Positions 1,543 to 63,306 are shown, counted from the stretch's first letter. The stretch is 64,000 nt of DNA from Auanema rhodensis (GCA_964057225.1 OZ059898.1:12462001-12526000), one strand, 5' to 3'. The notes: a model not told the origin generated them from the letters alone. Program-made: numbers and translations.

Positions 1543-2044
1543 GTCAATGAAGTTCTAACATCATCAAGATATTTAAAAACTCAGATATTCTACCCACTGC
1601 AGCAACCGTTAATAACTTTAAAACATTTTCTAAACAGACTTGAGTGTTTATCCTCCACTAATCAGGTTAAGTCGTCCTTGATTTTTTGTTCTCAATATTA
1701 CTATTTTCCAATTAATTCATGTTGATTGATGCTTTGATACCTAAATTATTAAAAATAATTAAGAATATAGTTAGTATAGCTAACAGTATACAACCGCTCA
1801 ACCGTTGTTGTCAATTCAAAATGATATTCTAATCTCATTGACGTAGGTCACGTAGTGTATTTCATATTTTCAAATTTACAATGATCAGAATTTTTCATTA
1901 TTCTTATAACTAAATACAATTTTCAAAGCTGTAACTTGATATAGTAACATGAATTGTATAATTCCAATCTGTAGAAATGTACCCTATAACTATATACATT
2001 GCTAAAATTATTTTCTTCCTTTTGAAATAGTTTTATTCAGCTTA

Positions 2045-3300
2045 ATGTTGATGTTAAAAACAGTTTTACTATCAATATTTGGATTTATTAATTGTTTTGG
2101 TTTATTATTATCATTAATAGTATTATATTCAGTTACTAAATTATGTTTTAAGTAAGTTTAAATATAATTATTTTCTAAAAAAAAAAGAAAAATTTAAGAA
2201 CTAAATCTTCTCCTATTTATACAATTGCTTTCTCAAATCTTATAGCTGATGCTACCCTTCTTATATTTAGTATTGGATATACAATTCCGGCTTATTTATT
2301 AGATGTAAATATTTTTTTTTTTGTTAAATCTTATAAAAAACTTTTTAGAGTTGGTTATTCCCTGGAGGAAGAAATGATCCATTTGTTCGATTTATTTCTT
2401 TTATGTTTGTTTTTGCTTGGAATAATATGACGTTTTGTCAACTATTTATGGCAATTAACAGGTATAAACTTGATAAACTTGAATAAAACTTTCTATTTGA
2501 AAAAATAAATTTTTAGATTAACCGTTGTGTGTTTTCCTTTTTATAATATTTTTACCTTTAAAGTTGTTCGTATTATAGTTATTTTACAAGTGATTATAGC
2601 GTTAACCATTACTATCCTTGATCAATTTATATTTCCATGTTGTGCGTAAGTTTTAAATTAAAACTTGAGCATTATTAAAATAAGTTTTAAGACTTGTAAT
2701 TGATCCAATAATACATGCATATTCTTATAATACAATTAAAAATATAATAAATTATTCAAATATCTATATTGATATACCACTTGATTCAACAGCTTCAATT
2801 ACGTGTATAGTTTGTTATATAATAGTAAATTATATAAAATATAAATATATATTTAATATATAATTATAATAATTAAGATATTTATATATGTAAAGAAAAC
2901 TTCATCTGGATTAGGACTTAGTCAAGCTGTTAAAAGTCAACGAAAACGAAAAGAATATATGTATGTTTCAACTAAACAACATAGTATAATTTTAAATTTT
3001 CTAATAATTCAGGTATACAATACAATTTGGATTAATTTCAATAGTTTATTCATGTACTTGGATACAATTCCAAATTTGGCCAATTTTAATAAAAGTTGGA
3101 GTTTCAACTTCATGGCTTATGTTAACATCCATATTCGTTTCATTACACAGTAGTACAAATGCAATTATTTTTTTATTAACAAATCGAGAAGTTTATATTC
3201 TTTTATTTTATTTTTTTTTATTTTTTTTATTTTTTAGGTTAAAGAAATATTAAAAAAAGAATTTTGTAGAATACAAACAAATACAATTAATTTTTCATAA
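2045..3300 (+). CDS. Nematode serpentine chemoreceptor (7TM GPCR, Srx-like), ~303 aa
   Basis: Eight exons (2045-2151, 2199-2304, 2349-2461, 2517-2645, 2692-2824, 2878-2960, 3013-3190, 3238-3300) join in frame. Multiple hydrophobic segments and Srx-type motifs SNLIAD, MAINRLTVVCFP, FPCC, RKRKE..TIQF and NAIIFLLTNREV. Confidence 0.85.
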
Positions 3301-4561
3301 AAAATTATAAAAATTCATATTATTTTATATAAATATACATAGAAAATAACATTTAAGCTTTAATTCATTGTAATATTATTTTATTTTTTTTTAAATTGAA
3401 ATTAATAAATAGAAATATATAAATTATAATTATTTTATTTGTTTATATAATTAATTATTATTACTTTTATAATAAATTTTCACCAAATTCTATTATAAAC
3501 GGACAAATATTGTGAAATGAAAGTCATTAAACACTTAATTGATGGATTTATCTTTAAGAGATAAGGATATTTAAAAATTATTTTGAGTGTTAACAGAGAT
3601 AAGGATTTTCTTAATTCTTATTTTTAAGCTAAAGGATGAGCAATCTGTTTGAAGGCTACAAGGTTGTCCAAGAACTGAAAATGAAGATGATGATCATACT
3701 GTAGATATCATAAAGCTTTGACCGGATACAACCGCTTACACGTCTTTTCAAACTTCGAATAAAAATGATTTTCATTGTATCCTACGTGGAAAATCTAGCC
3801 ACTTTGCATATTTTTTTTCGAAATATTGTCAACCATCTGAATCCTGAATCATTGAAATTCTCAGAAATTATTAAAAGAAACAAAAACTATTTACCAACGA
3901 AATCTATGTTGTGAAGGTTGGGTATGAAGAAGCGCATTAATTATATTTCAAGTAGTATGCTGGTTAATCGCCTACTATTGGCCAATCAAAAATCCACCAA
4001 TAGCAGCCTGCATACTACAGTAATACCATAATTGATAATTTATTAACAGAGAGCTAAGTTATATGTTTTTCTAGAACTTTTTTTTTTCTAAAAATAACAT
4101 AATAATATAATAATATAATTAACTTAATATATTCATTTCAGTTTTAAAAATAATTTGAAATTACTAAGGTTCACAGCTTAAACTACATACAAGGTGAGAA
4201 CTATCTAATATGAATCACTCATACATTGTTTGTAAAAGATCTTACACAAGAGATAACATTTCAAGGAAAGTGCTCATATTACCATATTAGAATGTATATC
4301 AACATCGGAACAACTTCTGAAGTGCCTATAAAAGCTTATTATCAGTTGAATTATTGTTTGTGATCTTCTTCTTAAGTTTTAGTTACACTTTTGGTGTTAA
4401 CACTGACAGTACCACTACGTTTGTCACTTCTATATTTTTAAAATAAATTTAATTTTACATATGTATATAAGTAGTTGATTTTGATCATTTTTCTTTTTGC
4501 TTTTCTTCAATACTTGAAAGAATACTTTTTAAGAAAATATTAATTTCAGACGTAAAATATC

Positions 4562-5003
4562 ATGAGCGAAGAAAATAATTCTGTTGAACGTATTACCACT
4601 CGAATGGGTGAAATGAAGGTGCAAAATGAGAAAAAAGTTTGTTTTTTAATGAAATTTCAATAAGTTTTTACCTTTAATTATTAAAATTTTATAGACGGTT
4701 GTGCCAGCAGTTTTGAAAGCTTTTGTTGAGAAGTATACATGTAAACTAAACTGTAAGGGACACCGCCTGAGTCATTATATAAAAGAAGCTCATGTCGAAG
4801 AATACATGAAACCTAGAAAGAGTGATGACATTGTGTTGTGTGCAAAAACTCATCTTTTTAAACGTTTGACGGAAATTTTCGAAGAAGAATTGGAGAAATA
4901 TTTAGAAAAACATGGAGATGAAATTGAAAAACCAAAGGGTTCATATGTTAAGCTAGTAATGATTGACGACCTGGCTGAGAACGCAAGTTCCTCTTCCAAA
5001 TAA
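4562..5003 (+). CDS. 127-aa orphan soluble protein, array copy 1 (most divergent)
   Basis: TTTCAG acceptor just upstream of the ATG (possible trans-splice site). Exon 1 4562-4636 (MSEENNSVERITTRMGEMKVQNEKK), exon 2 4695-5003 (TVVPAVLK...SSSSK*). AATAAA at 5057-5062. Confidence 0.75.
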
Positions 5004-7160: not shown

Positions 7161-7602
7161 ATGAGCGAAGAAAATAATTCTGTTGAACGTATTACCACTC
7201 GAATGAGTGAAATGAAGGTGCAAAATGAGAAAAAAGTTTGTTTTTTAATGAAATTTCAATAAGTTTTTACCTTTAATTATTAAAATTTTATAGACGGTTG
7301 TGCCAGCAGTTTTGAAAGCTTTTGTTGAGAAGTATACATGTAAACTAAACTGTAAGGGACACCGCCTGAGTCATTATATAAAAGAAGCTCATGTCGAAGA
7401 ATACATGAAACCTAGAAAGAGTGATGACATGATGTTGTGTGCAAAAACTCATCTTTTTAAACGTTTGACGGAAATTTTCGAAGAAGAATTGGAGAAATAT
7501 TTAGAAAAACATGGAGATGAAATTGAAAAACCAAAGGGTTCATATGTTAAGCTAGTAATGATTGACGACCTGACTGAGAACGCAAGTTCCTCTTCCAAAT
7601 AA
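7161..7602 (+). CDS. 127-aa orphan protein, array copy 2
   Basis: Same two-exon structure as copy 1; intact frame. Confidence 0.75.
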
Positions 7603-24500: not shown

Positions 24501-27500
24501 CAAACCAAACACAAGCATGCACAATTGTAATATTTGAAAAAGCGTGGAAAAAATGAATCGTACCTATTATTGGAACTTTTCGTTCGCGATCAGCAACTCG
24601 AACACATTTTCCAGATCGGTTTAGGGTATCAGAAGGACATTTACAGGTTTGTGTTGTTTCATCACATACTGAGCCGAAGTCACAGACATATGCTTCATTA
24701 CATACATGTCCAGGAGGAACTATAACAAATTAGTTATAGCTTATAATCACAAGTTTAATGTAGATCACCTCGTCGAATATCTTTACATTGCTGTCCAATA
24801 AGGTTTTTGCCTTGAGGACATGAGCACACTCCATTCAAGCACGAAGATCCACCAAGGCATTCATCAGTTGGCAAGCAATCACCACCAGGAACAACTGAAA
24901 TTCGATGATTAAGACAAGATGATTTTGAAAATAAACAAGGTGCTCCCAAAAAATAAAGTTTGAACTAAAGAAATAAAATAAAATAGATTAAGCATGCATA
25001 ATAAGTTGTAAAAAACTGTAGAGCGTATCTAGAAAAAGACAATTTTCACAATATTTTCTTCCAAACTATTCAGATTGAAAAGAAAAACATACTTTGACGA
25101 CCTCTCACACATTTTCCTTCTTTTATACGTTCTCCTGGTTTACATTGACATATACCATCAGAACAAAAAGCTAATCCAACACAGATATCTTCTGGATGAC
25201 AAACTTGTCCAGGTCGTCCTGGAAACAAATAGTTTGTATGTTGTATGAGAGATGAACCGACTTGTGACACGTGGTTTACAAATATCATCACGCTTAACTT
25301 GTCCAGGAGGACATTCACAGATGAAACCGTTACATTTTGAACCGCCAAGACACTCATCACCGTGTTGACAAGCTTCTAATGGCATAACTAAATGAAAAAA
25401 AATGAAATGGCTGAAAGATTTATTTGAAAAATTTACTTTTTTGTCGCATTTCACAACTTCCCGACCGTAATACCATACTTGAAAGACATTGACAAACTCC
25501 GTTACGACATACTGCTCGTCCAGTACATGTATCAGTTGATGTACAAACATTTCCCGGAGGAACTTAAATAAAATGAATAATAAACATGTATTAATCAATA
25601 TGATTACCTTGTTTTTGTTTTAAACATTTGCCATTAGATGGTACAGTCGAAGGACTGCATTCACATCGTCCACGAGCACAATATGATCCACCACCACAAC
25701 GAACAATGTTTGATGTGCAAGAATCTCCTGGTCCAACTACAGTTACATAAATACATTTCTAAAGAAAAAAAACACGTTATTAACTATTAATTATATAAAT
25801 ATAAATAATAATAAATTTGAAAAAAAGAAGAACATACTCCATCCATAATCTGATATCCTCGTTTACATGTACATTTCTTCTCAGAATGATTGCATTCAGA
25901 TCCACCGCTACATTCTTCACCGTTCGCACAGCTTTCACCAGCAGCAACTGAAATTCGATACAAAATTAAAAAATTCAATAATTTTGTACAACCGCTTGTT
26001 GTCAAAATGAAAAATAAAAATGAATTTGTTCTCAATGACGTGATTCAAATAAATATTATATTATGCTAATTAGTATAGTTATATATACATATATAAGTTT
26101 TGTATATCAAATGCTTGAGCACGGACCTGTTGGACGGAAGACACATTGCTTATTCACTTCAATCTCATCCTCAGCACAAGAGCATCGTCCATTACGACAA
26201 GATGAGCCACCAACGCAAAGCTCGTTGTTGGAACATGGATATCCTGGATGTGAACGTAATCGTTCTTGGCAAGTTTTTCCAATAATCTATAAAAAAATTT
26301 AAAATAATTCTCGAACATCACGGAATCGTTTCTGTACCATTTGAGTTTCTTTGATGCATTCACAACGATGTGTTGTCACATCACACTGTGATTCTCCAAT
26401 ACAATCTTCTCCATGTCCACATGTCTCTCCTGGTAAAGCTAAAACAATTTTGTTTTAATATCAATCAAATATCTCGGAATGATCAAACCTGTTCGATGTT
26501 CAACACAAATATTGTTAAGAGGAGTCATTCCCAATGGACAAACACAGTGACCAGCTACACAGATTGCTCCTCCACCACAAGATATTCCCACACGAATGCA
26601 ATTGCCACCAATATCAACTAAGGAGGATATGTGGTCAAAACAAAAAAAAACAGAAAAGTGAAAAGGTTAGATGAGATATTGTGAGACAAGCATGCAAATC
26701 AAACAGGTTAATGACCGTTTTTAGTGAATGTTGTTGGTGTTAGTGTTATGCTTTTGGGGGCTTTTCTTGTTGTGCTTGTTTGATTTATGGGTTTATTAGG
26801 CTTCTTGGCTAGTTTCTTTTTCATCAGCATCGTTGTTTGAGATTTCTGCAATAATTTTTTTGTGATTAAGGTTGGAAAGATGAAGTGCGAACCTCTGATA
26901 TAGGGCTTCGCATAAGTTTACGTTGGGACCAAAGGTTTTTGCAAGAACCATCGTTCATTTCTCCAAACATACATTGACATCTGATTGAAATATGAGTAAG
27001 CTTGATAATAAAATTACGATTCTTACTTTTTCATTACACAGACACGTCCTTGATGACAATCCGCATCGTAAGTACAACTGTTATCAGTTGGTGAGAGGGC
27101 AAACTGTTGTGTGCTAATACATAGTGATCCAACAGGTACAGTATCCTCTAAAATAGAAAAGTGTTATCATTTAAGATCAAAAAATAAATTTAGTTTACCT
27201 GGACAAGTACATTGATTCCTACTGATATCACAAAAAGCACCTCCAGGGCATTGTTGCTTGCTATCACACTGGCCCAAAGATGATCCAGAAGACCGGCATG
27301 TTCCTTGATTATTCACAGTTCCAAGTGGGCAAACACAAAAGCCATTTTGACAGTTTGATCCTCCACTGCACATCTATAAAACAAGAGAAAGTTAGGTATA
27401 ATCTAGGTTGTAACATACTTCTCCTTGAACACAAGATTGTCCTGGTGCTGCACTAACAGACTTCTGACACACTCCATCAATAGGTTGAGATCCAGGAGGG

Positions 27501-37358: not shown

Positions 37359-37435
37359 TTTCACGTAAGAGTTTCACGTAAGAGTTTCACGTAAGAGTTT
37401 CACGTAAGAGTTTCACGTAAGAGTTTCACGTAAGA
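37359..37435 (+). repeat. 13-bp minisatellite (TTTCACGTAAGAG)x6
   Basis: Six tandem copies, preceded by two degenerate in-phase copies (cores at 37337 and 37350). Confidence 0.95.
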
Positions 37436-39696
37436 TGCGTGTATATCATCAAATGATGAATAGAAGTTTAAACCAAATAGACTATGATGAACGGTTGATC
37501 TTTAAAAAATGAAACTTTTCACATTTTTACTTTCTATGTTGAACATTTCCACTTTTCTCATTCTGCACCTAATCAATCATCTACATTTATCTCAATCCCA
37601 TTTTCTTTTTCCTGTTGTTCTAGTGTTTGAAATTCTTTATATAAAACTTAGAATTATATGTATTTTTATCTCAGAACATTTGACCTACATATATACATAT
37701 ACATATATATATATATGTACTATGCTATATTATGCTCTAACTATGCGGTATCTGTTGTATAGCACAAAAGAATCATGTCCCAGCTCATAAATCTGTCCAT
37801 AGTTTTTATATAAAAGCAACCTTTCACCGCTGCTATATGTACTGTAGATGTTGAATTACAACTTCACAAAAAGTAGGCAACCTTTTCAGAATACCAAGGA
37901 TGCTGTTCTCTAATTCTATGTGTGACTAATTACCTCAATATTCTTTAACATCGTTTGAGTTTGGAAAAAAAACTGTTAGAGGATTGTAATGAGTAAAAGA
38001 ATATAAATTATTTGTTATAGATTATTACATTTAATTTTATATTTTTATATTACATAGTTAATAGAGCAAAAATCGGTGACCATTTTTCATATATAGTTAT
38101 GCATCTGCTTCAAGTATATACGTGATTCTACTCTTCTTTCTATCTTCTTTTCTCATCCTTTCTATCTCTTGTTCTTACTTTATTTTCCATTTTTTCTTCT
38201 CACTTTTCCACAATTTCACCGTTTGATCTGTTGCCCCCTTGGTGCCTGCTGTAATACACACCCTCAGACCTCTCTTCCTTCATCTTCCTGTTGTTTTTGA
38301 AAAGAGACGAATGAGAGAAAAAGAAATGGAAAGAGAGATGGGAAAGGAGAGTATACCGACATTTCCCAAGCTGCCAGAGAACGACCCTGTCTCTGCTCAA
38401 TTCCATTGGCATCCTAATTCCTAACTCTTTCTGCAACAAGTTGAGCAGTCGTTCTCAAGTTCTTTTCACCTTCTCATCATTCATATCAGTCAGATCACTC
38501 ATTTAACTCATTTCTTTATATTTCGCAATGTCTTTCCACGTAGTACAAGACAAAGCTGATGTGCTGCTCATATGATCTTTACTTCGTTGTCACATCGTTC
38601 GAACAAACTCTCATTAATCCTCGTTAACCGAACCTTGTTCCATGTACTCGCATTACATGCTTTATCCATACTTTCTTAGACTTAATCAGGTGAAGCTTCT
38701 CTAATTATTTGTGTTCCATCATGCACAAACTAACATCATTTCATAAGCATAAACACATACTTAGTATAGCTTTGCTTTCGAAATACAACAACCTCACAAA
38801 TATATGCAGAAGTCTTAAAAAAATTTTGACCAAAATAAGAAAAGTGAAGAACGTATTTCTTTTATCCTTTTTCCCTTTATTCATTTTCTCACCCACTATT
38901 TCCTCTTCACTTCTTACCCTCCTCTCTCTCTTACCCTCCTTTTTCATTTCTCTTCTACCTATTCTCTCTATCTTCATTTCTCTCTTACTTGTTTTAGTTA
39001 TTTTTCTGAATTTTAAATGATCAGCTTTACTAATGGCAGAGACACTTCTTATCTTCGTGTGGTCGATGCGTTCCGAACACTGCGAATTTTTTTTTCAACT
39101 TTTTTGCCGTTTGGACGATTGACATGGCCATTGCAACCAATCTGTTTAATCGTTTCCACTTTACTTTTAGTCATTTCAACAGTCATATCTAAACTTTATT
39201 TGAAAGAAAAAAGAAAAGTTTTTTTCTTGATCATAGATTCTTTATTTCTCCCGAATTATGACAGCAAATTAGCTTCAACTGTGAAACTACTGTTGTTATA
39301 TAAACAAAAGGAATGAATTACTTATAAAAAAACTTTTGAGACAATCATTCCATTAGTCAGTTCTTCATCATGTACCTTAGTAATCATTGTACATTGGAGG
39401 TTGAAACATCATTTTCCCATCAAATAACTAAAAAGAAAAAATTATTTTTCGTTGAAAAATAAATGAAAAAGTGCTTAAGATTAGAAGAACAAACTGAACT
39501 TAAGTTCATTGATCAATTCATTTTAATTCAAACAACTATTTGATTTTAAATTTTTGTTATTATGAGCATTCACTTATATTTTAGATAATTATTATTTTAA
39601 TTTATGAATAAATTTAAAATTAAACATTAATTATATGTACAGATCTTCTATACTATTTTAAAAGTTTTCTTTTTGAAAAATACCCTTTATATTCAA

Positions 39697-39728: not shown

Positions 39729-42700
39729 TTGTGACCACTTTTAGTTTACAATAGAGTATATAGATCATTTTAACTAACATGAGACATCTGGACTCATAAT
39801 AAGCATATATTTGACTTTTTTTTGGTGGATAATCCAGCGTTAATGTTATAGTTTATTTACAAAATATTTAACCCTTTTTCTCTCTTTGAAGTTTTTAATC
39901 ATTATTTTCAAAAATAATGTTTTTATGAGTGAATAGTTTGCAACGTTCTCAAGGGAATCTGTAAATCACAGAAGCAATTGGCATATTTTCGTGTTTAAAG
40001 AGAAGTTGTCTCGTAAAAATGGTCATTGAGTAGACTATCAACATCATAGTTCTACTTTTTCATAAATTCTACTATTTGCAAGAAAAAAAAAAGAAAGAAA
40101 TAAGAAAGTTGTTTTATCTTTTTTAACCTTTTTCACTTAAAAATATTCACGTGTATAAACTCTAACTGACTATACGTATAGTATAGTACTCTTAGTATTC
40201 TAATTGTTTACGTGAACTTTGACGTAAATTTATTTATTATTTAACATACACACAATCGGTTGTCTTTATATTTTTTAAATCCTTAAACAACAGATTTTTT
40301 GTTTCTAAAAAAAAAATAAAAAATATATGTATATGAATATAAATATAATTTATATTTAATGGATAGATAGATCCCTCATGAACAACATTTGTGTTATCAT
40401 CTTCAAATATTATTTTTGTTGAGATAAAATAAATGGAAATAACCTTCATCAATCTAAAACTTAACTCAGACCAAAGATTTGCAAGCAGTAAACTCAGAAT
40501 GTTTTTTTTTCAAAAGAAAAAGACAATTTTTATCATTTGTATTTTGGAACAAAAGAATATTTTCTCGTTAGCTTAAACACATAATAAATTTTAGAAAAAT
40601 TTCTTTAAAAAGGATGGTAAAGTGAAGCAACAACAGACTTTTTTTGTTTCATGTTGCTGTTTTCGTATAATCTATTGTAAGATGCTTTGGTCAATTATTT
40701 CCACCTCACTAGCCATTTTCTGTTGCTGATTCGTCTATCCTTATTTGGCTGATTTATCTCTCCTGGATAGAAGCTTTAAGATGAAGCTTGTTAACAGAGC
40801 TAGTTGCTCAGCCGTATATATCTTTTGCTTCGTTTTCTACGTCTCACAGAATTACACAAGAATCTATAGTTTAAGCTTTTAAAGCAATGGAGTTTCCGTA
40901 TTCTGTTGTTGCATCTCGCACACGAAATTTTTGTCATTTTACTTTTGCTTCCATAGCATTCTTGCGTGTTGTGTAGTATATCATATTTGTTTCTTTAACT
41001 TATATGTTATAAGATTATATATAATTATATAGCAATGTTTATGATGATGAAGATAATGATGATGATGATGATGGTAACACGCAGGATTTGAATTCTAATT
41101 TATAACTGCCATTTGTCTGACAGGCTTTCATCAAATCCTTCATAAAATTATCGTCAGGTGTTGAACTATTTGCTCTATTTCATACTTCATTTACATATAT
41201 CAATCGATATTTTAAATATGTTTAGCATCCACTAATGAATGTTGATGATGATGAGCATGGTGACGACGTCTGATGCCTTCATATCAAGCCTCTATCCTCT
41301 ATCTCTCTATCTAGTATATGTTCTCTGTCTTCATTTCTCTCTTTGTTTCTCTTTTTTCATTCGTTCTCACTCTCTTGGAGTTTTTGGACGTGCTGTAATC
41401 TTTGCCGCATCGTAGTTGGATGAATTCTGTGTGACATCAAATAGGCTTCATCATCAACAGATACAAACACATCGCCTACAAATCATTTTCGAAGAACAAG
41501 ATGGGAAAGATAGAAGAGCTAAAAAGATATCTCTATTTCGTTAAGCTCATGAATTTCCATTGTTCGGCCGCAAGTTCGCTTCCACTATGCCGGGTGGTTA
41601 GATGGCTGGGGCAAGCCGCAACTAACGCCTCAAGCACGAGCACAATCCCAAACGCGCGTCATTTGTTATTTCACTTCGCCAACGTTTTCAATCAAAAGAA
41701 TTATTTTTTCGTTCATCTATACGTTTCAATAGGATTAACGAGGAAACTCATCACCTGTTAGAGAGGATTCGAAGTGTTATGCATACCTCATCCACATCTT
41801 CACCATTCACCCTAAACCCAAGCTTACATAGTACACTTGAGAAGCATTCCTTATCCTTCCTTCCTCGAGCCCCCTCTTCTTTATATATTATTTATATTTA
41901 AAAAATAAAATTGTTGATACTCACAAAGTATATATGTCACCTCGTAAAAGCTGTTCAACTTTGAACTATCAATTCAGATGAATTGCTCACAGATGACTAA
42001 ACTCAGCAGACTTTTTGGAAACAACCTACTTCTGCGGACTGATGACTGACGGCAGTAGCAGATGTTGAAAAGTATTTCCTTTATATCTTCTTTTCACATT
42101 TCATATATTTAAATACAATATATGAATAGTAAGCTTATGATGTAAGCTTTTCTCTTTTGCTTTTCCCCCAAAAAACAATTGTTCCCATTACATGCTCTAG
42201 AGTATTTCAACGTCTTTTTCCATCAATTACATAGTTGTTGACCTCATCTGATTTTTGATTTCGACCTTTTTCAGCCATAAAAACGTAAAAGTTTCAAGTT
42301 GTTTTTGTTGGAAGAATATGAATCGATAATTAGATGAAAAGTGCTCTCAAGTTACAGAATTAATTATGATTTCGCCACTTCTTCTTATCGTCACTACGTC
42401 ATCAACCTCACTACATTTCGCTATTTCACGGCTGTACATGTATCATGATACCTCATCTTTTGATTTCTCGGATTTTTTCTACATCTTCTTCATATCTTCA
42501 AATTTTCAAGACATCACGACTTAGTTTGCAACTGAAGCAGCTTGTTCACTCAACATGGCTAATGGACTGTTTCTGTGTTTTCCTTTCTCTCTCTCCCTCT
42601 TCCTCTCACTTTCTTTCTCATTTCTCTTTAAAAACTTCTAATGAATCTGACCACATTATACAAAATAATTTAATATGTCGAATAAAGCAGCCAAGTTATT

Positions 42701-45700
42701 CACTATATCTGCTTAACATCTGCCAACCGTCTTCGAAGATCTGCCACAATCCATTCGACCTGACATCTATTGTTCATCCTAATTGTTCTGACCTTCAGTA
42801 AAGTCGAAGCCTCCTGATGTGTCAGCTATTTTGGTCGGCATCATCTCAAACATGACTCCACTTCGCCCATTACTTTGTTTCTAAAAATTAATTTTCTTGT
42901 ATTGTCGGAGTTTTTATTTACATTTAAGCTTATTACTACATTCCACTTCACATCGTATCCTGCTGCGATCAAGCCTATCCTCCAATCTACTAAACCAATT
43001 ATCATCGAACGTTTCAAGATGTACTTGATCATCAAGACAAATCCAAGATTTAACCGCCACAAATTGACCTTTGAGACTCTCAATTAGATGAAATCCTATG
43101 ATGCTATGCGGCATTCTAACTTAAGGTTCTTGTCGTATTGTGATCATCATCCAGCTTTATTCAAGCTTCCTCCTCTCTCTTATGTCACGTTTTTCCCTTT
43201 TTTTTTCCTTATCTCTCTGTTTCTACACGTGTTTATGTATTTAGTCTCCATATGCAGCAGTTAACAAGTGTGGAGAAAACTTATTTATTGATAATCAAAA
43301 CCTGAAAAAATCATGATTATCATCTTATTTATTCACATATAATATGCTTTTTTGATTTTATTTGTTTTGAAAAAATTGAAAGAAATATTATCATTCCAGC
43401 TCAAACAACAACACCCAGCATTTACTTTTATTTTCACTCTTTTTGCCTCTAGCACTTTGAAAATTATTTTTTCTTCCCTGTTCAAATTTGAGTAAAAATA
43501 CATTTCTCTCTGAATAATTTAGCACATTTCCAATAAAAGTTCAACTTAGATATCAATTTTAATCTCTAAATTTCTGACATATTCAATCAACACACATATG
43601 TTCTTATATCTGCTTCTGCTCTATTTCAATAGCAATTTGCCATATATATTTTATTTGCTCATATGATGCTTATCATAACTATATGTTATAATCCGTTTTA
43701 TAATTAGCTATTTAACATATATTTTCATTATGTATACTTAACTATATTAAGTACTATATCCTTATAAGTTTAACATTTCCAAATTAACAGATAGCAAAAA
43801 CATGTGTTGCCCTCATCCCCTACATATGAGGTCCCTAATCCCACCTCCTTTTACTCACAGGCTCCACCTCTTCTTCTCCTCTTCCTCTGCATCCTCTAAA
43901 TTTCTTCATCAATACCTACCCTTCCAGTAGTCGTTTTCTGTAAACCTCCAACAATATATTCTTATTCAATTCACGTTTTTTTCCTTTTTTTTTCCTTCTC
44001 TCCCATCAAAAAATTTCTTTATTTTATCTGCATGAGATTGTAACCTGCAATTATACCAACAACGCATTTTCTTACATCTTCATGCCAAATACGATTATTC
44101 TTTGTGTGGTCATGTCTGAAAAGCAGAAATCTTCTTTGTTACTTTTGAAATTCCCTTCGTTTGTTTCTGCGAAAAAAAAACTGCGAAACAATGATATTTC
44201 ATTCACAAACTGTTACTGTGTTTCAGTTTAAGTCTGTTACTCATTCTTACTCATACGTATACCCTTGATCATCTTCTTCAAATACTCATCCTTTTCTTCT
44301 TCTTCACCTTTTTCATTTACAGTTACATGAAGATTTTCTTCAAACTTCGCGCCAATGTCATTCATTACACCCAGAAAAAAAATTCTTTTTGGCCATTCAT
44401 GAAATAGTTAATCGTCCTGTGAGCTCAAACATACATACATATACGTACGTATGCCGAAGATTGCTCATCTGCTCAGCCCATTTTCCAGCTGATTACCCTA
44501 CCTATATGTGCAGGTGTTTGTCCCTATCTGCACCATATTTTGGTTTTGCTCTCTTGTTCCCTGTTCCTCATATGATCTAACCCTTTCATTTGCTCTCTCT
44601 CGAGCTCACCATTGGCTATTCTAAACATCAATGTCTTTATCTATTCTTATTCACCTGAATACATGAGCTCCTGCTGCCCTTCGACGCAACTATCTCCGCG
44701 TCCTGAGCCTAATCCTTCTCTCATATTCCTGAATATCAGCTCTTTACTATATATGTGCCTAACTATGTGTACCATCAGTGACGCAACATTAAAGGTGCTT
44801 GAAAGTGTCTAACATAGAGGCCGTCAATCAAATGCCAATTTTTGGATCCAACCATTCCGCTCTCTCATCTTTCTGTTTGCTTGTTTGTTTGTTGATATTA
44901 GCTCCAATATGTTCATCATCGGCTAAATAGGTTGAGTAACATAGCTAAGATGGCAAAATGTACACAGCAGGTTCTCTCTTTCTCATGTCCTTATACTTGA
45001 GGAAAGCAAAAAAAAAATATTTGCAAAGATGATGCTGCTCTAATTAGATTATTAGGATCATTGCGTTCACGTGAACATTTCACGTAAAATGATCTATTTT
45101 GCCATTTATCATTTTACTTCGAGTAAGTCGTTGATGAACGGTTGTATTGCAACATTTCAAAACTTCATCATCATCGTCTTTCTTTTCGTTCTTTCTAATT
45201 TCATATAATTCGCAATTCAATGTTATCTTTCTTTCTTTAAAGACCAAATTACTATATAATCATTTGCTAAACGTTTTAAATTTTCTTTTTGATATTTTCT
45301 GTTAATATCTTACGATGCTCATCAGAGTTTCTATCAAATGCTCTACCCCCACCGGGTGGTCATCCGTCATGTCTGTTCTTCACTTGTCATGTTCATTCTC
45401 TCGTTTTCTTTAGCTCTATCAAATCATTCTCCATTAAATTTCTTTTCATCATTCATCTATTTTTCCCAACCAAAAATTTTATCTTAAACACATATGCTTT
45501 ATACTCTTTTGCTCTGCTTCTCCTTTGCCCCACTCCCTCCCTTTCTCCCTTCCTCTCTGTATATTAGATTTTCCCGCCTCACATGTTCTTTCAACGATGT
45601 ATTTCATGTGCAATTCAGATAGCTAAACTCATACCACATATATGAATATATTATTATAAAAATAAATACAACACTTATTTGAAATAAATACACATTTCAT

Positions 45701-47664: not shown

Positions 47665-49634
47665 ATGGGCGGAAGTTCTTCCATGTATCAGCAGCACCCA
47701 CAAGAGTTAGCAATGATGGCTGATCATAATTCTCTCGTTGATATCCGTTCAATTGTCAATGGAATTCCAAAGATGATGCAGGTATAGACCATCTATAAAG
47801 CTATATGTTTAACTTTATTTTGTTTTGAACAATAGGTCGCAGATGATATGCATAGAATGACTGATTATATCATGGATTTAAGGAATATGACATTAGGTCT
47901 AGTTGCTATATCTTTGATTGGAGTTATTGGTTAGTAATGTTTTTTTTTATCATTTTCTTCATTCATTTTTCAAATTTAAAAGAAAAAAAGTTTTAAAATA
48001 ATATGATTTAGGTTTCCTTATTCTTCGTGCAGTTAATGGTCGCAGTGGAAGAAGCCGTAGAAAGAGATCTATTATGAGACAGGTTAGTTAACTATTTTAT
48101 ATTTAAAATATTAATATTTTGAATATATTTATTATAAATAATAATTTATATATTCTTAAACAATATGAAATGTGTAAAGAGTTTATCATATATATAGTTA
48201 TATCTTTTCACATAGTTTGAACATCATGAGAGTGTTAAGAAAAGAAGAAACAAACTATAAAGATTATCTTGATTGAAATATAGTTGTATTGGAATGTAGT
48301 TTCGATAGTTTATAAACGTGAGAGATATAGTGTGTAGTAGTATATGTTTAGTAAATAAGATACAACCGTTCATCTAAATTCAATCATGCTAAATGAGTCT
48401 AGAAGGTTCACGTGAATTTTACGTGAAATTTGATTTATTTATTGATTTTCTGAATTTAATTTCAAAGAATTTCCAATTTCAACGAAGTTCTTAAGATTCG
48501 GAAGTGAAGAAAAAAAAAGTTTTATATGTATGGACTTGAATCGGCTCAAGATCAAAGGCAATGGTGCCATACGGAATGCTTAGGTAGCTTTAGATGTTGC
48601 CGATGTACATATGATTGTCTGCATAGTTTGCATAGTTAATCAGGAAATTATTGAGTATTAGTAAGAGAAGTTATGTATGCTATAGCTATTAGTAATAACT
48701 ATACGTTGTTTGTCAACTATATGATGATGATGGATGCACGATACACTAAGGAACAAGCATATATATATAGTTTGTAATAGCTTTCCTATGTATTGTAATG
48801 AGAATGAGAACGAAGAAGGATAGGGGAGAGAAAAGCTCATGATGAGAATGAGCTCATAGGCAAAAACATTATCTTTCAAACTTTTAAATAGCAAATCTTT
48901 GATAAATCCTCTGATAATAGGTCGTTTTTCAGGTTGAAGAAGGATATCCACCTATGCCACGATACTATTATCAGTCACAATATGCTCCTGAGCCATGGGA
49001 TAGACCAAAATCAACGTTCAGCCATCACAGGTAGTTTTGAGATTTCAGATGAATACGTGTCTAATTCAAATTTTTGTTTCAGTCAATTAGAAGAGAAAAA
49101 ACCAGTCGATAGCAGAAGTAGCCCAGAAAACAATAAGATCAATGGAGCACTTCCATACAAGGTATGTTCACAAACGTTTTGATCTTTTGCTGCTCCATTG
49201 AAATGAAACAGATTGCATGAACAGGACAAGCTTTGCCAACATTCCGCTTCAATCATTTGAACTATTGAATCTCCTTTGTACTACCTTTGTTCAACTGCAT
49301 GCATCTTTTGGCTTTTTTCATTCAGATTTCATTTGTCAGGACAATTTCCAGATGTCTAATACTGTTTGAAATTCATGAAAATTTCTCCTCTTCTTTTTCA
49401 TCCTGCATCCAAAACTTCCTTTATTCTAATGATGTTCACATTTCCTTCCTATTGGCTTTTAATCCAATTAACCTTAACGTTTTTTAGTCTTTCACTAATG
49501 AGGAAGCCGTCAGTCCAGACTTGGATAAGAAAATGATGACCACATCTCTACCTACTGATGCTAACTCCGGAAGTAACGGTGGCGGATTTCGACACTCAAC
49601 ATCCACCTCCACACCGCAGCCACAAAAAGTCTGA
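47665..49634 (+). CDS. Single-pass membrane protein, ~201 aa, unknown function
   Basis: Six exons (47665-47781, 47836-47929, 48012-48082, 48933-49030, 49083-49161, 49488-49634) in frame. Starts MGGSSS; TM segment LGLVAISLIGVIGFLIL followed by basic RSRRKR; ends PQKV*. AATAAA at 49827. Confidence 0.85.
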
Positions 49635-53069: not shown

Positions 53070-56000
53070 TATTAACTAATGTAGTTTTCGCGGAAAATCA
53101 ATTTGAAATTCATAAGAAATACGTGGAAGTTCACGTACGCGCACAAACATCAATTTCAACATTATTCGCAGAATGACAAGGTGTTAGAGCGGTTGCATTT
53201 CAGCTTTGTTTCATGGGTTTTTGAATAAACTTTATTTTGAAAAAAAAAGAATAGAAATTACCGTTATATGTCATTTCTGGAGGTTGATGATCAGCTTCTA
53301 TGGTTTGTTCAATGTATCCTAAACATCATCGTGATGATAATGGTGAGGAAGAAAGAAGAAGCAGAAGAAGAAACGTTAACGAACCTGTTGAGTATTGAGG
53401 GCTTTGGCCATTCAGACTACCTGATGGCGAATTACTATCACTATCTCCTTTGATGTTCTGATTCCATCGTCTTCCAGCATCCTTCTTTAATCGTTTCTCT
53501 TTTGCTCGTCTGTTTTGAAACCACACCTGCAAATAGGACAATGAGCATAAATCCAACGAGGAAGCTTTTTTTTTTCATTTTCATCAACTAATTGATACCA
53601 GTAATCTTTTTTTTTTGATAAGAATTCTTTTTTTGTTAAGTAAAATTCTAATTTATTATCACATCATCAACTACTATGTATACGCATAATAAGTATTTTG
53701 AATAGTAAAAAAGAAAAATGATGATAAGGTTGATGATAATAATATCAAATTTTTGGCGGAAATTAAGTGATGACTATAAATTATCAATTTCATATTCTCT
53801 TTGTTTCTCTCTTTTCTCTCTTCTCATCGTATGCTTTCTCGCTCTACACTACTCCCTTCTTATCTTTGTTTCAATATTCAGCATTCTTTAACTTATTTTC
53901 TCCTCAACTGCTCAATTCAAACCATTTCATCAACTGGTAGACCATTTTTGCTGCGGCTTACCCCGACCTGATTATAAAGTTTCCGGGAGCCATCAGCTTA
54001 TCCGCTTAGTAAACCGGTTGTCATGGATACCGTAGATGGTCCGTATCTTACAAAGGATACAGCAAGCTTTTAATGGTTCATCCATTCGAAATGAACAAAT
54101 TTGGAAAATATTATTTGCACAAACATATAGTGATAGATATATAGCTAGCATATTAGAATGCACGTGTTGTATATGTGTTTCTAATTGAAAATCAAATAGA
54201 TTGGGGGTATCTTGAATGCCGTTTTGACTGGATAGAACTCATCGGGTAGATAACGTAAATTTTAAATGTAATTTTCATTGCTCGTGTTCAATTTTACGAA
54301 TTTTATTTAATAATACAAGTATTTCCTTAAATGGTTTACCTGCACAACTCTCATATCTAATCCGGTTTCAGCTGCTAATTGTTCGCGAACATGTCTAGCC
54401 GGTTTGCTGCTCAGTTGATAAGCCTTAAGAAAATATGCTTCATTGACATCTATGAGTATATTTTGGAAAATTCATTTTAAACTTTTCAAGAAAATAAATT
54501 ATTAGTCAAGGTAAGATATTGACCTTGTTGAAATGCATCAAACAATTTGAAAAAAAAAAGAAAGAATTCGTTTTTGTAAAAAAACGAAAGTGATAACCAA
54601 CCTGTTTTAATGTCTCAAGACTTTTAGCAGAAATTGTGGTACGTGGTCGTTTATTTCCTCCATCCATATCGGAATCAGATGCTGAAAGAAGAAACATATA
54701 ACTCTCTATATAACAGCTACGATTTTCTATTTCTATAAGATGAATGAACTATTGTACATGGAGATATACGTAGATTATAGGATATAAATGGAAATTCGAA
54801 CAGTGGTCTTCTCTATCAATTATATGGAAACGATATATACATATATGTGCATATGTATGTGTGTGCAATATGATGTTGTATTTAGTGAATTTCATATTTT
54901 ATTATTTATCATATAAAATTACTTTAGAGAATTTGTCTGCAACTATCTGTTAATCTTGTAGACTAACTAAATAGTTCAATGACTAGCAAGATAGCTTCAT
55001 ATGCAGATGCTGCACAACATACTGAGAATGATAGTTTGTTGAAATAAAACGAAAGGTTGAAGAAAGTCTTGAAAAAGAAAAAATAATACAAAGATAGAGA
55101 GAAAGGGGTAGGGAGGAAAAGAAAGAAAGAGAGAGAAGAAGTAAAAAGACCAGGAGTCGAGATACGAGATTTGAATTATTAATCGGAGGCACGGCTCTCT
55201 TTCCAACCCTCCAACCTTCTACCACCCCCTTCACGTACTCCACCTCTCTAGCTTATGTTTCTCTCAATCTCTCCGCCTTTCAATTCACTTGGTTTGGCTT
55301 GGTGATATCCAAAGGCAGCTGGCCCGATTACCACCAGCCGTCGTTGTCAACGTAGTTCATGTCAGCCAAATGTGACCAAAGCGATCGGAAAGATTTTCTA
55401 ATGAACGAAACATATGAAGAACAAGCATGTGTTCAGCAGTTCTATGCTGTGTATGTGTGTTAAGAACACAAAGAATATGAATGAAATATACACATAATTT
55501 CCATAATATGTGATGATCATATGATAAACTAATATATTTCCTCAAATCTGGGTGAAGAGACTTTAAGCTTCAAAATCAATTCATGATATATATATATACA
55601 TATATATCATATGATGGGTGAGGAACTGGAAGTAAAGGCTTGAATTTGCAACTGATTTCCGGCTGACTTTCACGTTAATAATACTCAAACTGATTGATTA
55701 GAACAGATAAATCTTCTACGTTGTATGGTTGTGTATACAAAGACTTTTTCGATAATGAACTAAAGGTTGGCTGTATGTATGGAAAGACAGAAATACAAAG
55801 ATTTTCTCTATCAAGAGCTATATATGGCTGTAAAAGGAAGCGCGAATATGAAAGAGGGTAGTGATAGAGAGAGACAAGGAGAGAGAGAAAGAGAAATAGA
55901 GATAGAGAGAGAGGGGGAAATACAGATAGAGAGAGAGAAAAAAGAGATAGAGAGAGAATGAGAATGATTGAATGAAAAGTAGCACGAGTGATGAAGATTA

Positions 56001-57877
56001 TAAAACAAATGAGAGACGGAATACCAAGTTGCAACCCCTTTACATGGGAAAATCTTCCTGAAATTTAATAGTTGGACTGATTAAGAATAATTTCAGGTAG
56101 AAATGTTTTGTCGACGGAATTTTTCTTGGGAAAATGGAATAGAATTCTATCCATTGGAATTAAACAGTCAGCGTGAGCATATAGAGAGATATTTCTCTTT
56201 TAGATGATTAGATTGTTTGATGAAACTTTTAGAATATAAAGAGAAAGCAAGGATTGTGATGTAGATAAGTCTGATGAAAAGTGAATGCACCATCAGAGGA
56301 CTGGGTGAGATTGAGAGATGTGGTTCATAAAATAAAAGTCATTTTTCATGATATTCCAATTGAAGAAAAATTGAAAGTAAATCGAAATGGAGAAGAATTA
56401 TTAGATTAAGATAATTCATTATTATCAATTAAAAAAATAAAAGTTGAACGTTTTACAAGAGATTGTGGAGAAATGAAGTAAAGAGAAAATGATATCAGGT
56501 ACAGATGAAATTTGCTCTTTAAGCCTATAGTACCGCGATTGGTTTTGAAGTTGAATTGAATTACAAGGCAAAATGTAATGTAATAAGTGTGTATGTTACT
56601 AATATCTATTTATCAGTTCGAATTGAGCAATTTGCGATAAAACATGTGAGAATGGAATTAAATCTAAAAACGTTTGATACTACTGGTAGCAGTAAGTAAG
56701 CAACTAGCAGCAGAAGTAGTAAAAAGAGAAATTGAGAGAGGGAAAAAGAAAGAAAAAGAGAGAGAGAGATGAGGGAGAGGATGAGAAATGATTTTGACAA
56801 AAGGATATGCAACCTCTATATCTTCATGTTGCTGCTGTTGAATAAGCCATCATGAGGCAATTATTTGCAATTAAAAATAATTAGAAGATTATGTTGGGAC
56901 TGGCGGTGAAGCTGCTAATATAAGTTATCTGATTTCAGTCGCATGCTTAATCGCTCTGGAGGGAAAACTGAAACGCATAAAGAAATTTTGAAATGAGAAT
57001 GAATATGAAAGGTATATGTGAGATAATAAAGCCACGAGAAAATGGTGAGATGTATATAGAGAAGAGGGAATTAGAGAGACAGAAAGAACACGAAATAGAG
57101 AGAAAGAGACAAATTGAAACAGAAATGCAAAGAGAAAAAGAAAGAGAGAGAGAGAAATAGAGAGAGAAAGAGAGAGATAAAGATAGAAAAAGAGAAAGAG
57201 CGTTGTGAAGAGAGTAGAGAACGACCGTTCTATACGTATGCATCGTGAGAAATGATATGCTTACCTCACGTAAAGCTCACGTGAATTTGAAAACTCGATT
57301 GAAAGTCTAAAAATCAACTGATATCTGACCAGTTATACATATATGCTAGCTATTATCTATCGTATAGATTAACTTCTATACGTCTACATACTGTTAAGTC
57401 AAATACAGCAATAGAGGGTTGGGGCGGAGTTGAGAAGTTCATCTGTGGAAATTGTAAAACTACTAACTCGCTATTTTTATTATTTCATTTTACTGCGTGA
57501 CTTTGGATACTTTTCGGGTGAAACAGTTTAAAATCTCTTTTTCTGAAGTACGCTTGCTTTTGCTCTCATCAATTGTAGCAACAGATTCGTGGTTGACGAC
57601 AGCACTATTGAAAATTTGGATCATTTGGCTGTAAAAATAGCCAAATGATTACGTAAACGAGGAAAAAATACAATATTTCCATAAAGATATTTGCACTACA
57701 TAACAATATATGAATGTTGAACTGATAACTATGTTAGCATATCCAGATTTTGGATCAGTTGCTAAATGATATACTATATCTATGAAATATGAAAATTTGT
57801 ACTTTGAAAATTCAATAATTACGACATCAGTCTATCATTTTCTTCATCGTTTATTTCCGATGTCCTTTAGCTATATA

Positions 57878-57930
<53 letters not shown>

Positions 57931-60900: not shown

Positions 60901-63306
60901 CAGCTTTTCATTCTCTCAGCTATTCGTTGTTCCAACAAAAAAAATTAGCACTTCAACTCTATCGTGTGACTTAAATTCACGAAATTTTAGTTTTTGATCA
61001 GTATTTTTTGCAGCAAAAAAAAACTAAATGAACACTGCCATAAATAGTCGTGGAAATTCTCCACAAATCATTACATAACTCTTATCATTTTTTTTCTTTT
61101 ACGGTTCAATCGTTTCAACATATAGTTTTTCCTCTTTTTTTCTTCTCTTTTCTTTTGCTCAATTATTGTCCATATTCACCTATTCTGAAATGATCAATTT
61201 ACGTGAACTTCTCACGTAAAGTGCAACAGCTGTGTTAGAATAAGCAAATTACATCATCATTTACTATAAGTTATATTGACTTTATTGTTTTAAAAATAAT
61301 AAAATCAACTACTTAACACACAACACCTTAATCTGGTACTTATGTCAGGTCATCTAAGGTCTGTAGCACATCGATGTTTGTATTTTTATTTGCACGTTTT
61401 TCGTCTTACACTCCAATCTTTCTTATGTACCATGTTCATGTACTTTTTTTGTAGTTTTTTTTTTTTTTGATGGAAAAAATTATTTTTTTTTGAATTACCG
61501 TTCATTTTCATATGAAATGTATCGAATTTTCTCTAGTACGTTTGAAGGAAAATAACATAACATTCACAAGTGATTTGCAAAGAATCTCAAAGTACACTCT
61601 CCAATGATACGAGATATCAAGAGTCTATAGTAGAAGCAGAAAATGGAGATTAGGGGATCGGAAACAATCGTTTTTTCATGTTTTTTTTTGATAATGTGTA
61701 GGCTAAAAATTAATTTTTGACAACAGTTGTAGAAGGGTTGTCATGCAAAGACAACAAAGGGGAATTAGCTAAGAAGAAGAACATTTAGCTGTATGTAAGA
61801 TAGAACATGGATTAATGAGAGAATAAGTCAGAAAAATAGCTGAGAGATCTACGTATAAAGGTAAAGAGAAAGACACAACGTGTCATTCTATCGGAAGATA
61901 AACACGACAGATGTGGATGGGTTAACAGGTTGACTGCTTCTTCTTCCAGTCATGTTCACACCTTTTGCTTTGGTTCTGCCGAAAAACATGGTGAAAGCAT
62001 TAGAAGCAGCCTTGTGTCGTCGTCAAACCTCGCCCTCCCCTCTCCACTCTTTTTTCATTTTGTCATACTATGTCTTCTAGGGCTATAACAATGAAAAAAC
62101 TGAACGTTTTCCGAATATTTGTGTTTTCTTTCTAAGCTACACCAGTCGAGAAAGCAGAAGAAGTAACTACATAAGACCACGGATTTAAGTGATCACGTTA
62201 ATCGGCTCCAAGCATCATGTGATAGAAGATAGATGATTGCATACTGATCAAAATATCAAGAAAAAGAACTTATACTTACACGTTCGTGTTTCCAAGCTTC
62301 TATATAATGCTCAGCAGTCCGATAGTCGTCATTATCCGTATACTCAGCATTATAGGTTAAATTAAGCAAAACATGAACAGTAGATATTATTAAAAACTGA
62401 GCCAAATGAAGAGGGAGCAAGAGAATGATAGAGGGAGAGAGCAAGAGAAAGTAATACAGAAAACTGAAAAATGTCCAAATCCTCCTTATATCTTGTGTTT
62501 GTATAGTTAGCATGATTAATAGTACATCCATTAATGGATAATGGCTTAGTGGCTGTACCTAACCATACTAGGTGTGAATACCGTAACCACCAATTTTGGA
62601 TAGATTGAGCCATAAGGTGGTAACTGCTCACCTGCGCATCTCAGGTTTCAGTGAGTGATCAGTCAAAAAACACTAAAAGCAAGACAGCACTTGAGAAGAT
62701 CTAAGCTGAGCATTCAGTAATTGTTATAAAACTACTATAATCAGAGCATACTACATGACTTTTGACTCGAAATGATTTCTATTCAAGATATTCAAGCATT
62801 AAATCCTTGCCGGGACATGATTTTGAAGATTATCCTTTATCTATTAAACTGCTTCCAAACAGCTTTTTCTTGTTGTCTGATTTAAAATAGATAAATAGTC
62901 ACAATGTTGAGCATAATTGCCGCCGAAAAAAAAACTTATCCTATTGCACATTTGAGGACCATATCTTAACGACAACTATGATCATGCTGAAGTTGTTTAT
63001 GACCAACAACCAGCTGTTTCTATAGTTTATGACTTCTAGTTTATTTCTTTTTTAGATAATCCTATCATTTATTATAATTTTCAAATTATCTTTTACAACT
63101 GATTATCACGTGTGGTCCACGTGAGTTACGTCGATTGCTATTCATACGTGAGTGCAACATTTTCATTTTCTGCAGTTGAAACAAGCGGTTGATTATCAAT
63201 ATTCATCAACACTATATATCATTTTCCCTCAATTCCTTTCGAAGATCTCTACTCTTTCTTTCGTATATTCTTTTGATCCTCAAGAGTTCTCGTGCTCTCT
63301 CTCTTA

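Follow-up and report, generated by a model that had tools for sequence, protein, structure and literature searches.

In a 64,000-nucleotide stretch of the genome of the nematode Auanema rhodensis (GCA_964057225.1 OZ059898.1:12462001-12526000; here called the window, with positions counted from its first nucleotide), an oriented module of ∼80 bases recurs every few kilobases. ACGT boxes stand at one end of the module and a CGGTTG box at the other, as an earlier note on this DNA had described; added here are a third box between them, the register that it keeps with CGGTTG, and a match to the fly-type layout of initiator (Inr), motif ten element (MTE), and downstream core promoter element (DPE). 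These provide a prediction of the transcription start site at single-base level, namely, the A of TCATTT, 26 nucleotides before CGGTTG. Judged by its agreement with consensus sequences, each copy may well be a compact promoter cassette for RNA polymerase II, TATA-less and ∼80 bp long, that makes unstable, short, or unannotated RNAs, a reading to which we give about even confidence. The sequence read was this window, and the statistics of the module are derived from its 11 copies.

Recurrence and anatomy of the module

In an unselected listing of both strands, there were 25 CGGTTG/CAACCG sites, of which 15 were unique once the six copies of a 2.6-kb tandem array (3.6 to 19.3 kb) had been collapsed, compared to 5.5 ± 2.5 expected from dinucleotide shuffles. 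An ACGT was located 30 to 85 bp 5′ of the oriented CGGTTG at 11 of the 15 unique sites (background probability from the window's own ACGT density, 0.118; binomial P = 5.6e-8), and two or more were located there at 9 of the 15 (P = 2.8e-13), whereas the same distance on the 3′ side held an ACGT at only 1 of the 15. The co-occurrence and one-way orientation that the earlier note had claimed are far beyond chance, and each of the strings that it quoted was found at the position given. TCACGT alone was present 42 times versus 11.9 expected from shuffles (3.5-fold; z = 9.2).

Starting from the ACGT boxes gave the same picture. Pairs of ACGT 9 to 14 bp apart numbered 16 versus 1.9 expected and formed 11 independent loci, 9 of which had an exact CGGTTG 31 to 73 bp away, always pointing outward. 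The pair at 57265 had a one-mismatch CGGTCG at 57222-57227 on the minus strand, and the pair at 61198 was the sole locus without such a box, in agreement with the claim that every cluster but that one has a second box; the 61198 pair may represent a copy that has decayed or was never complete. The previous listing had missed the copies at 25989 and 3729 (with five tandem repeats of the latter) and the third box. Four unique CGGTTG sites without ACGT boxes, at 4696 (exonic, in each of the six array units), 54015, 1603, and 42724, look like background, their number matching the chance expectation. Chance as the origin of the module itself is ruled out by the unselected enumeration and the shuffles.

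When the 11 copies were anchored on CGGTTG, the conserved box around the hexamer extended over 12 nucleotides, R-A-R-C-G-G-T-T-G-T-A-T. The three bases before CGG were R-A-R (GAA, AAG, GAG, GAT, and AAT), with GAAC in four copies. A third box, Y-A-T-T, was situated between the ACGT boxes and CGGTTG: T was found at both −25 and −24 from the anchor in 10 of 11 copies, and the sequence at this place was TCATTT, GCATTT, or ACATTT in seven copies, TTATT in three, and AAGTTT in one. The pattern CATT-N(21-27)-CGGT[TC]G occurred eight times in the window, each time with ACGT boxes upstream. With the A of Y-A-T-T as +1, the next two bases (+2 and +3) were T in 10 of 11 copies, and the C of CGGTTG was at +27 in six copies, one base to either side (+26 or +28) in three, and at +29 in a single copy, which places it within one base of +27 in 9 of 11; AAGTTT is in the place of Y-A-T-T in the remaining copy, at 37492. 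Eleven copies suffice to make the mode of these spacings firm, though not their tails. The sequence over +24 to +33 was GAACGGTTGT, AAGCGGTTGT, or GAGCGGTTGT.

The ACGT boxes had the form T[CT]ACGT[GA]A. For 8 of 10 copies, the start of one such box fell in the range −27 to −34, with further boxes about one helical turn to either side, and the outer boxes varied in distance and in number (one to seven). In three pairs, exactly five bases separated the hexamers (48410/48421, 57268/57279, and 63108/63119). No TATAWA was found within 80 bp upstream of the box in any copy, and the −31 to −24 region was occupied by an ACGT box instead. A 13-bp tandem repeat, AAGAGTTTCACGT, at 37354-37435 (6.3 copies; 98% identity) multiplies the ACGT box of one copy and is a local expansion of a binding site through replication slippage.

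Base composition changed at the downstream box. G accounted for 7.2% of the bases downstream of the box (+12 to +59), compared to 15.9 ± 2.4% in random sets (P = 5e-5), and the element strand was T-rich there; the upstream side had no comparable bias. The GC content climbed to 55% at the box and then dropped to 20 to 24% behind it.

All-against-all blastn of the 800-bp segments around the copies (±400 bp) yielded in-register matches of 12 to 15 nucleotides at the boxes and low-complexity matches elsewhere, and a recent transposon, miniature inverted-repeat transposable element (MITE), or Helitron was rejected as the identity of the module. This upheld the claim that the spacers are dissimilar and that terminal inverted repeats are lacking. 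Even between the best-matching copies, 45082-45147 (+) and 48360-48424 (−), the ACGT boxes come in a different order and all of the spacers are dissimilar. It seems improbable that the boxes go back to an old transposon family of which the functional boxes alone survive, a proposal about origin that is compatible with any of the functions considered here. An information-rich module at high copy number would fit such an origin, as would a longer string, GATGAACGGTTG, that is common to three copies within 11 kb, and there is a precedent in the thousands of fixed-spacing m1m2 motif pairs of CERP2/CELE2 MITEs, which are bound by HIM-17 and act as germline promoters (PMC9757741). Against it are the lack of similarity outside the boxes, of inverted termini, and of shared flanks within ±400 bp, and the fact that ACGT box order and number differ even between the two most similar copies.

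A scan of metagenome contigs with the strict pattern gave 17 loci, which were read as chance matches and are most likely microbial; none looked like nematode or human DNA. Twelve of the 17 share one matched sequence, on contigs of 42 to 47% GC; the other five are single matches at 31 to 59% GC, two of them mutually homologous. A homology search with the open reading frames (ORFs) of the window, aimed at a comparison with a sister genome, found no match, and no description of the motif in Auanema was found in the literature.

Correspondence with core-promoter consensus sequences

In flies, the DPE is RGWYV or RGWYVT at +28 to +33 from the initiator A+1; the MTE, first given as CSARCSSAAC (+18 to +27), has been revised to CGANC (+18 to +22) plus CGG (+27 to +29); and the initiator consensus is TCA+1GTY in flies and BBCA+1BW in humans and other mammals (PMC5580651). 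The computational DPE consensus of Ohler et al., CRWMGCGWKCGGTTS, ends in KCGGTTS (quoted in PMC4803293). Counted from its own Y-A-T-T, the nematode box reads C+27, G+28, G+29, T+30, T+31, G+32, and T+33, preceded by GAA, AAG, or GAG. All 11 copies fit RGWYV, with GGTTG or GGTCG, and T is at +33 in seven. CGG, the second MTE contact, is present in all 11 copies, with (G)AAC ending at +27 in four, but the first contact, CGANC at +18 to +22, is absent from the copies. The CGGTTG hexamer corresponds letter for letter to the end of KCGGTTS, and the copies, apart from the one with AAGTTT, agree with the initiator consensus except for T instead of the fly G at +2. The fly DPE register is exact in 6 of 11 copies, off by one in three, off by two in one, and without a Y-A start in one, whereas flies tolerate no shift, a 1-bp change in Inr-DPE spacing lowering activity several-fold (PMC5580651). 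From the degeneracy of the consensus strings, we estimate the chance that a random pair of boxes would fit the initiator, the DPE, and the single correct spacing at roughly 1e-5.

The module thus appears to have a fly-type Inr-MTE-DPE layout, to the extent that a match to consensus sequences can indicate one. In the mechanism proposed, the ACGT boxes, usually two about one helical turn apart with one near −30, would bind an activator of the bHLH-ZIP or bZIP type (the factor is a guess), with an ACGT box taking the place of a TATA box. The activator would help TFIID dock on the initiator (Y-C/T-A+1-T-T-T) and on the MTE/DPE-type box (R-A-R-C-G-G-T-T-G-T, +24 to +33), and transcription would proceed from the A of TCATTT, away from the ACGT boxes, through CGGTTG, and into the G-poor, T-rich tract. 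The product would be a short, unstable, low-level, or stage-specific RNA, such as an enhancer-type, antisense, or alternative-promoter transcript. Such RNAs are favored over the output of main mRNA promoters because the copies are found within introns, whichever way they point, and in gene-poor DNA, and because none of the assembled transcripts starts at them.

Core-promoter geometry would account for the strict polarity of the module and for the one-sided position of its ACGT boxes, and a rigid Inr-DPE part accompanied by variable outer ACGT boxes is the usual layout of activator sites beside a core promoter. The published A. rhodensis genome has 60.6 Mb, 32.2% GC, and 11,570 genes (PMC6469403), and the density of the copies, ∼1 per 4.6 kb of unique sequence, is similar to this gene density, a point counted in favor of the promoter reading.

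Two other assignments of the boxes were rejected. In a TATA-Inr reading, with TCATTT as the TATA-like element and CGGTTG as the initiator, the distance fits, but TCATTT is no TATA box and Inr plus DPE fit better. The opposite polarity, in which CAACCG would be a Myb-type proximal sequence element, AAATGA would be TATA-like, and the start would be inside the ACGT boxes, was ruled out because the number and distance of the ACGT boxes vary as in upstream activator sites. A known structured RNA gene of the snRNA, snoRNA, SL RNA, miRNA, or tRNA kind behind the putative promoter was likewise rejected: there were no Rfam matches at gathering score, no tRNAs, and no stable fold, the 147 nucleotides from the putative start folding no better than shuffles (z, −1.6 to +1.4). 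ORFs past the boxes were short or of low complexity, and a protein-coding gene directly downstream was rejected as well. At the 37492 copy only, AAAATG is found 17 nucleotides past the box and opens a 93-codon ORF that runs into a TA repeat.

Several observations weigh against the promoter reading. In the 43000-48999 interval, the transcript contigs (from three small transcriptome-like runs of low sensitivity) represented only exons of the host gene, and neither the copy at 45139 (+) nor that at 48363 (−) had a contig downstream of it, despite deep coverage of the host gene; contigs of such small runs cannot reveal rare, short, or nonpolyadenylated RNAs. The copies are away from the 5′ ends of recognizable genes, and several are antisense in introns, while the 2.4 kb upstream of an expressed gene that starts near 47626 contain no cassette. 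The CGGTTG hexamer hardly varies and is far less degenerate than fly DPEs, which would also fit a sequence-specific factor. The exact Inr-DPE spacing in just 6 of 11 copies is set against the single-base-pair sensitivity of fly promoters. In C. elegans, Saito et al. found no enrichment of DPE or MTE at start sites (PMC3730108). The resemblance to the fly motifs is a resemblance to consensus sequences and does not amount to a test of binding.

Much of this would also be expected of a composite site for sequence-specific factors, with a bHLH-ZIP or bZIP protein on ACGT and a Myb/SANT, zinc-finger, or other protein on R-A-R-CGGTTG-T-A-T, acting as an enhancer, silencer, insulator, or architectural element and having no transcription start. 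We regard this as rather unlikely. The near-invariance of the hexamer speaks for it, as does the length of the conserved box, which at 12 nucleotides exceeds the typical TFIID contact. The location of copies in introns and gene-poor DNA in either orientation to genes and the lack of detected transcripts among the assembled contigs are also consistent with it, and CAACCG fits a candidate Myb half-site, YAACNG. What a composite site leaves unexplained is the fixed +27 distance to the initiator-like Y-A-T-T, the letter identity with the fly MTE/DPE, and the G-poor tract on one strand. Compared with a Myb half-site, the Inr-DPE register and the fly MTE/DPE match give the better account of the CGGTTG box and of the way it is oriented. 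Of the site for two factors that the earlier note had put forward, the oriented composite module with ACGT boxes of bHLH-ZIP/bZIP form was retained, whereas the assignment of CGGTTG to a Myb-like factor gave way to the fixed +27 register and the MTE/DPE match.

Autonomous mini-genes for PIWI-interacting RNA (piRNA)-like or other short capped RNAs are a further candidate, one that we consider quite doubtful. CATT would be the YRNT of such genes, the precursor would start at the A, the mature RNA would start at the T two bases on (+3 to +23), and CGGTTG at +27 to +33 together with the low-melting tract would stop the polymerase after ∼28 nucleotides. Dispersed units of ∼100 bp that occupy either strand, both between genes and, in sense or antisense, within introns, resemble Pristionchus-type piRNA loci (PMC6436959), and the sequence between the boxes is different in every copy. 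CATT or TATT in 10 of 11 copies fits YRNT, a weak pattern that is part of any initiator; the GC peak at the box and the subsequent fall resemble the published pausing signature; and the ∼10,000 copies expected per 60 Mb are on the order of piRNA gene numbers. However, the anchored alignment contained no GTTTC (Ruby) motif at a fixed or expected place, CTGTTTCA was not clearly enriched in the window (7 versus 3.3 expected), and every product would begin with UU(U/Y), an unusual shared 5′ end. A Ruby-motif piRNA cluster was also sought as an identity and was absent from the window. The related Oscheius tipulae keeps Ruby-dependent clustered piRNAs, and full replacement of the promoter in the Auanema lineage is therefore not the parsimonious expectation.

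In its fullest form, this proposal would have the cassettes encode, in this lineage, a large class of RNAs that are short and capped or piRNA-like, with an E-box-type activator and DPE-positioned TFIID, a start at the A of TCATTT, and CGGTTG plus the tract ending the transcript after ∼28 to 35 nucleotides. We have little confidence in it; if true, the cassettes would represent a kind of promoter without relation to the Ruby motif, derived from SNAPc, that other nematodes use. The literature yielded no description of an E-box-type promoter of small RNAs or piRNAs in nematodes.

The earlier note had favored a chromosome-scale mark, one that would recruit dosage compensation or condensin, serve as a pairing centre or centromere seed, act as a replication origin, or signal DNA elimination. 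A regular spacing of a few kilobases irrespective of genes would suit such a role, and GA/CT-rich tracts, which adjoin several copies, recall the hot-spot sites of C. elegans holocentromeres. The internal layout, in contrast, is accounted for by core-promoter geometry, and no sequence link to the known rex/MEX, HIM-8/ZIM, or SFE motifs was found. The chromosome-scale role was thus left without support, and we consider it very unlikely.

On the evidence of C. elegans, nematode promoters are considered to be without DPE and MTE, and trans-splicing masks the true start sites in nematodes. If the promoter reading is true, an Auanema-type nematode has on the order of ten thousand textbook fly-style Inr-DPE core promoters, recognition of the DPE by TFIID is used in nematodes, and start sites in this species can be predicted from sequence alone. 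The question would then be what thousands of intronic and intergenic promoters under one ACGT-box factor are for, with enhancer RNAs, antisense control, alternative promoters, and a class of small RNAs as the possibilities.

Copies and their genomic surroundings

The window is eukaryotic DNA with 31% G+C and small exons. Table 1 sets out the copies and the genes around them.

TABLE 1 Module copies, neighboring genes, and tandem array in the window
Feature	Position	Strand	ACGT boxes	Third box; A+1	Downstream box	C of CGGTTG	Remarks
Copy	1791..1853	−	1841, 1850 (starts −22, −31)	TCATTTT; 1822	CGGTTG doubled, 1799-1804 and 1791-1796 (−)	+27 (distal CGGTTG)	
Copy in tandem array	3729..3787	−	3784, 3740	TTATTC; 3760	AAGCGGTTGTAT	+27	∼150 bp upstream of EB-module exon, same strand
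Identical array copies of the 3729 element	CGGTTG at 6331, 8930, 11529, 14128, 16727	−					
Copy	25989..26041	−	26038 (one)	TCATTTT; 26021	AAGCGGTTGTAC	+28	Intron of EB-module gene, sense; TTTCAG acceptor and EB exon begin 46 bp past box
Copy	31347..31427	+	31347, 31361, 31375	GCATTTC; 31395	GATCGGTTGA	+27	Between two EB-module exons of minus-strand gene, antisense
Copy	37337..37498	+	Seven, six of them in 13-bp repeat AAGAGTTTCACGT (37354-37435)		GATGAACGGTTGA		AAGTTTA replaces Y-A-T-T at expected Inr position
Copy	40149..40263	+	40149, 40174, 40210, 40222	TTATTTA; 40232	AATCGGTTGT	+26	
Copy	45066..45147	+	TTCACGTGAACATTTCACGTAA	TCATTTT; 45111	GATGAACGGTTGTAT	+29	Noncoding DNA, 2.5 kb upstream of expressed plus-strand gene
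Copy	48360..48427	−	TTCACGTGAATTTTACGTGAA (starts −30, −19)	TCATTTA; 48394	GATGAACGGTTGTAT	+27	Inside 850-bp intron (48080-48929) of expressed plus-strand gene, antisense
Copy	53121..53196	+	53121, 53133	TTATTCG; 53164	GAGCGGTTGC	+27	Just past last homeodomain exon of minus-strand LIM-homeobox gene, pointing into gene
Copy	57222..57285	−	CTCACGTAAAGCTCACGTGAA	TCATTTC; 57253	Variant box GAACGGTCGT	+27	LIM-homeobox intron, sense; variant GGTCGT still fits RGWYVT; CT-rich tract next
ACGT pair	61198..61220	.	TTTACGTGAACTTCTCACGTAAA				No CGGTTG on either side
Copy	63108..63195	+	Four, including CACGTGtggtcCACGTG	ACATTTT; 63159	AAGCGGTTGA	+28	(CT)n tract next
Tandem array	3632-19303						Six copies; period 2599 bp, first unit 2602
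EB-module gene	∼19.3-32.2 kb	−					Many EB-module exons
Small single-pass membrane protein gene	47626-48999	+					Expressed; protein begins MGGSSSMYQQ...
LIM-homeobox gene	53329-59765	−					Homeodomain exons 53.3-54.7 kb, LIM exon 59.6 kb; long introns

Copies were found in introns of three genes, as had been claimed earlier: the EB-module, membrane protein, and LIM-homeobox genes. There are four such intronic copies, two in sense (25989 and 57222) and two antisense (31421 and 48363), and three consecutive copies, all pointing the same way, are situated in gene-poor DNA upstream of the plus-strand gene. Both sense copies linked to EB modules have a TTT(T)CAG acceptor 46 to 58 nucleotides past CGGTTG (25943-25989 and 3671-3729, minus strand), which could be a coincidence or could reflect internal promoters feeding a trans-spliced exon.

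Each unit of the tandem array includes one cassette, a plus-strand two-exon ORF (start near 4557; second part, 4695-5003) without a Pfam match, and, on the minus strand, two EB-module exons (in unit 1, at 5784-6174). Three units aligned over the cassette were 99% identical, and the array copies are therefore uninformative about selection acting on the boxes.

Transcript contigs from three runs with the same species label connect the exons of the membrane protein gene (47626-47779, 47834-47928, 48011-48079, and 48930 onward) and confirmed three GT..AG introns, the 850-bp intron among them. A TTTCAG acceptor 21 nucleotides before the contig start suggests that the transcript is trans-spliced. 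The LIM-homeobox gene was recognized by its LIM (E = 1e-10) and homeodomain (E = 2e-5) matches; by eye, we take its homeodomain to resemble the Lhx3/CEH-14 type.

No convincing coding ORFs were found in the ∼15 kb from 32.6 to 47.5 kb. The plus strand of this region (32600-47500) is strongly pyrimidine-rich, the GC skew reaching −0.34 and the AT skew −0.18, and its three cassettes all point the same way. The region could be transcribed as one long noncoding unit, or it could belong to the 47.6-kb gene as an outron or 5′ region of very great length. Long (TC)n/(AG)n microsatellites and GA-rich repeats of 24 to 32 bp are situated at 33375-33459, 51121-51213, 55866-55957, 57881-57927, and 63295-63346. 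Several of these repeats are 100 to 200 bp downstream of cassettes (57222 and 63186), with the pyrimidine strand being the cassette strand.

Comparison with known systems

TATA-less, TFIID-bound core promoters of Drosophila were reportedly the subject of work by Burke and Kadonaga in 1996, by Kutach and Kadonaga in 2000, and by Ohler in 2002. The cassette shares with the Drosophila Inr-MTE-DPE arrangement an initiator-like box around A+1, CGG at +27 to +29, GGTTG(T) as RGWYV(T), exactly at +28 to +33 in 6 of 11 copies, the lack of a TATA box, and strict polarity (PMC5580651, PMC4803293). AAC or R-A-R before the box, G or A at +24, and the identity of CGGTTG with the end of KCGGTTS are further points in common.

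Among nematode systems, piRNA (21U-RNA) mini-genes are similar in that they are ∼100-bp autonomous units present in thousands on both strands, in the Pristionchus type within introns in sense and antisense, and in that an upstream motif and a Y-R start precede a variable body and a low-melting downstream tract (PMC6436959). The cassette differs from them in having an ACGT palindrome rather than GTTTC as its upstream motif and a conserved downstream box, which piRNA genes lack; moreover, Ruby clusters of the ordinary kind are present in the related O. tipulae. In Caenorhabditis, the m1m2 pairs that HIM-17 binds are likewise made of two motifs in fixed spacing and orientation, with thousands of copies, many of them outside annotated promoters, and both motifs are needed for promoter activity (PMC9757741). 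Whereas m1 and m2 were said to resemble no known eukaryotic motif, the boxes of the cassette match E-box/CRE, Inr, and DPE sequences (PMC9757741). The m1m2 pairs are situated in recognizable MITEs with inverted repeats, while the cassette has no transposon body.

Paired E-boxes are recognized by bHLH-ZIP proteins in the carbohydrate response element (ChoRE), CACGTG-N5-CACGTG (Mondo/Mlx), and in the CLEAR element, TCACGTGA (TFEB/HLH-30), and PAR-bZIP proteins have the sites TTACGTAA. The T[CT]ACGT[GA]A box is of this kind, and the five-base hexamer gap of three pairs is the same; the spacing within the cassette, however, is 9 to 14 bp, and its half-sites mix TCAC and TTAC. The rex/MEX and HIM-8/ZIM motifs of C. 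elegans are also short, clustered motifs in noncoding DNA, but they are confined to the X chromosome or to one chromosome end and are without initiator/DPE geometry.

Against the Drosophila promoters, the cassette, known here from its sequence, stands out: it is in a nematode, its box is almost invariant, it has T at +2, its spacing is exact in 6 of 11 copies, and its copies are in introns and gene-poor DNA rather than at mRNA 5′ ends. The unusual features of the cassette are its host phylum, the near-invariant downstream box, the ACGT box at the position of TATA, and the dispersal through introns and gene-poor DNA.

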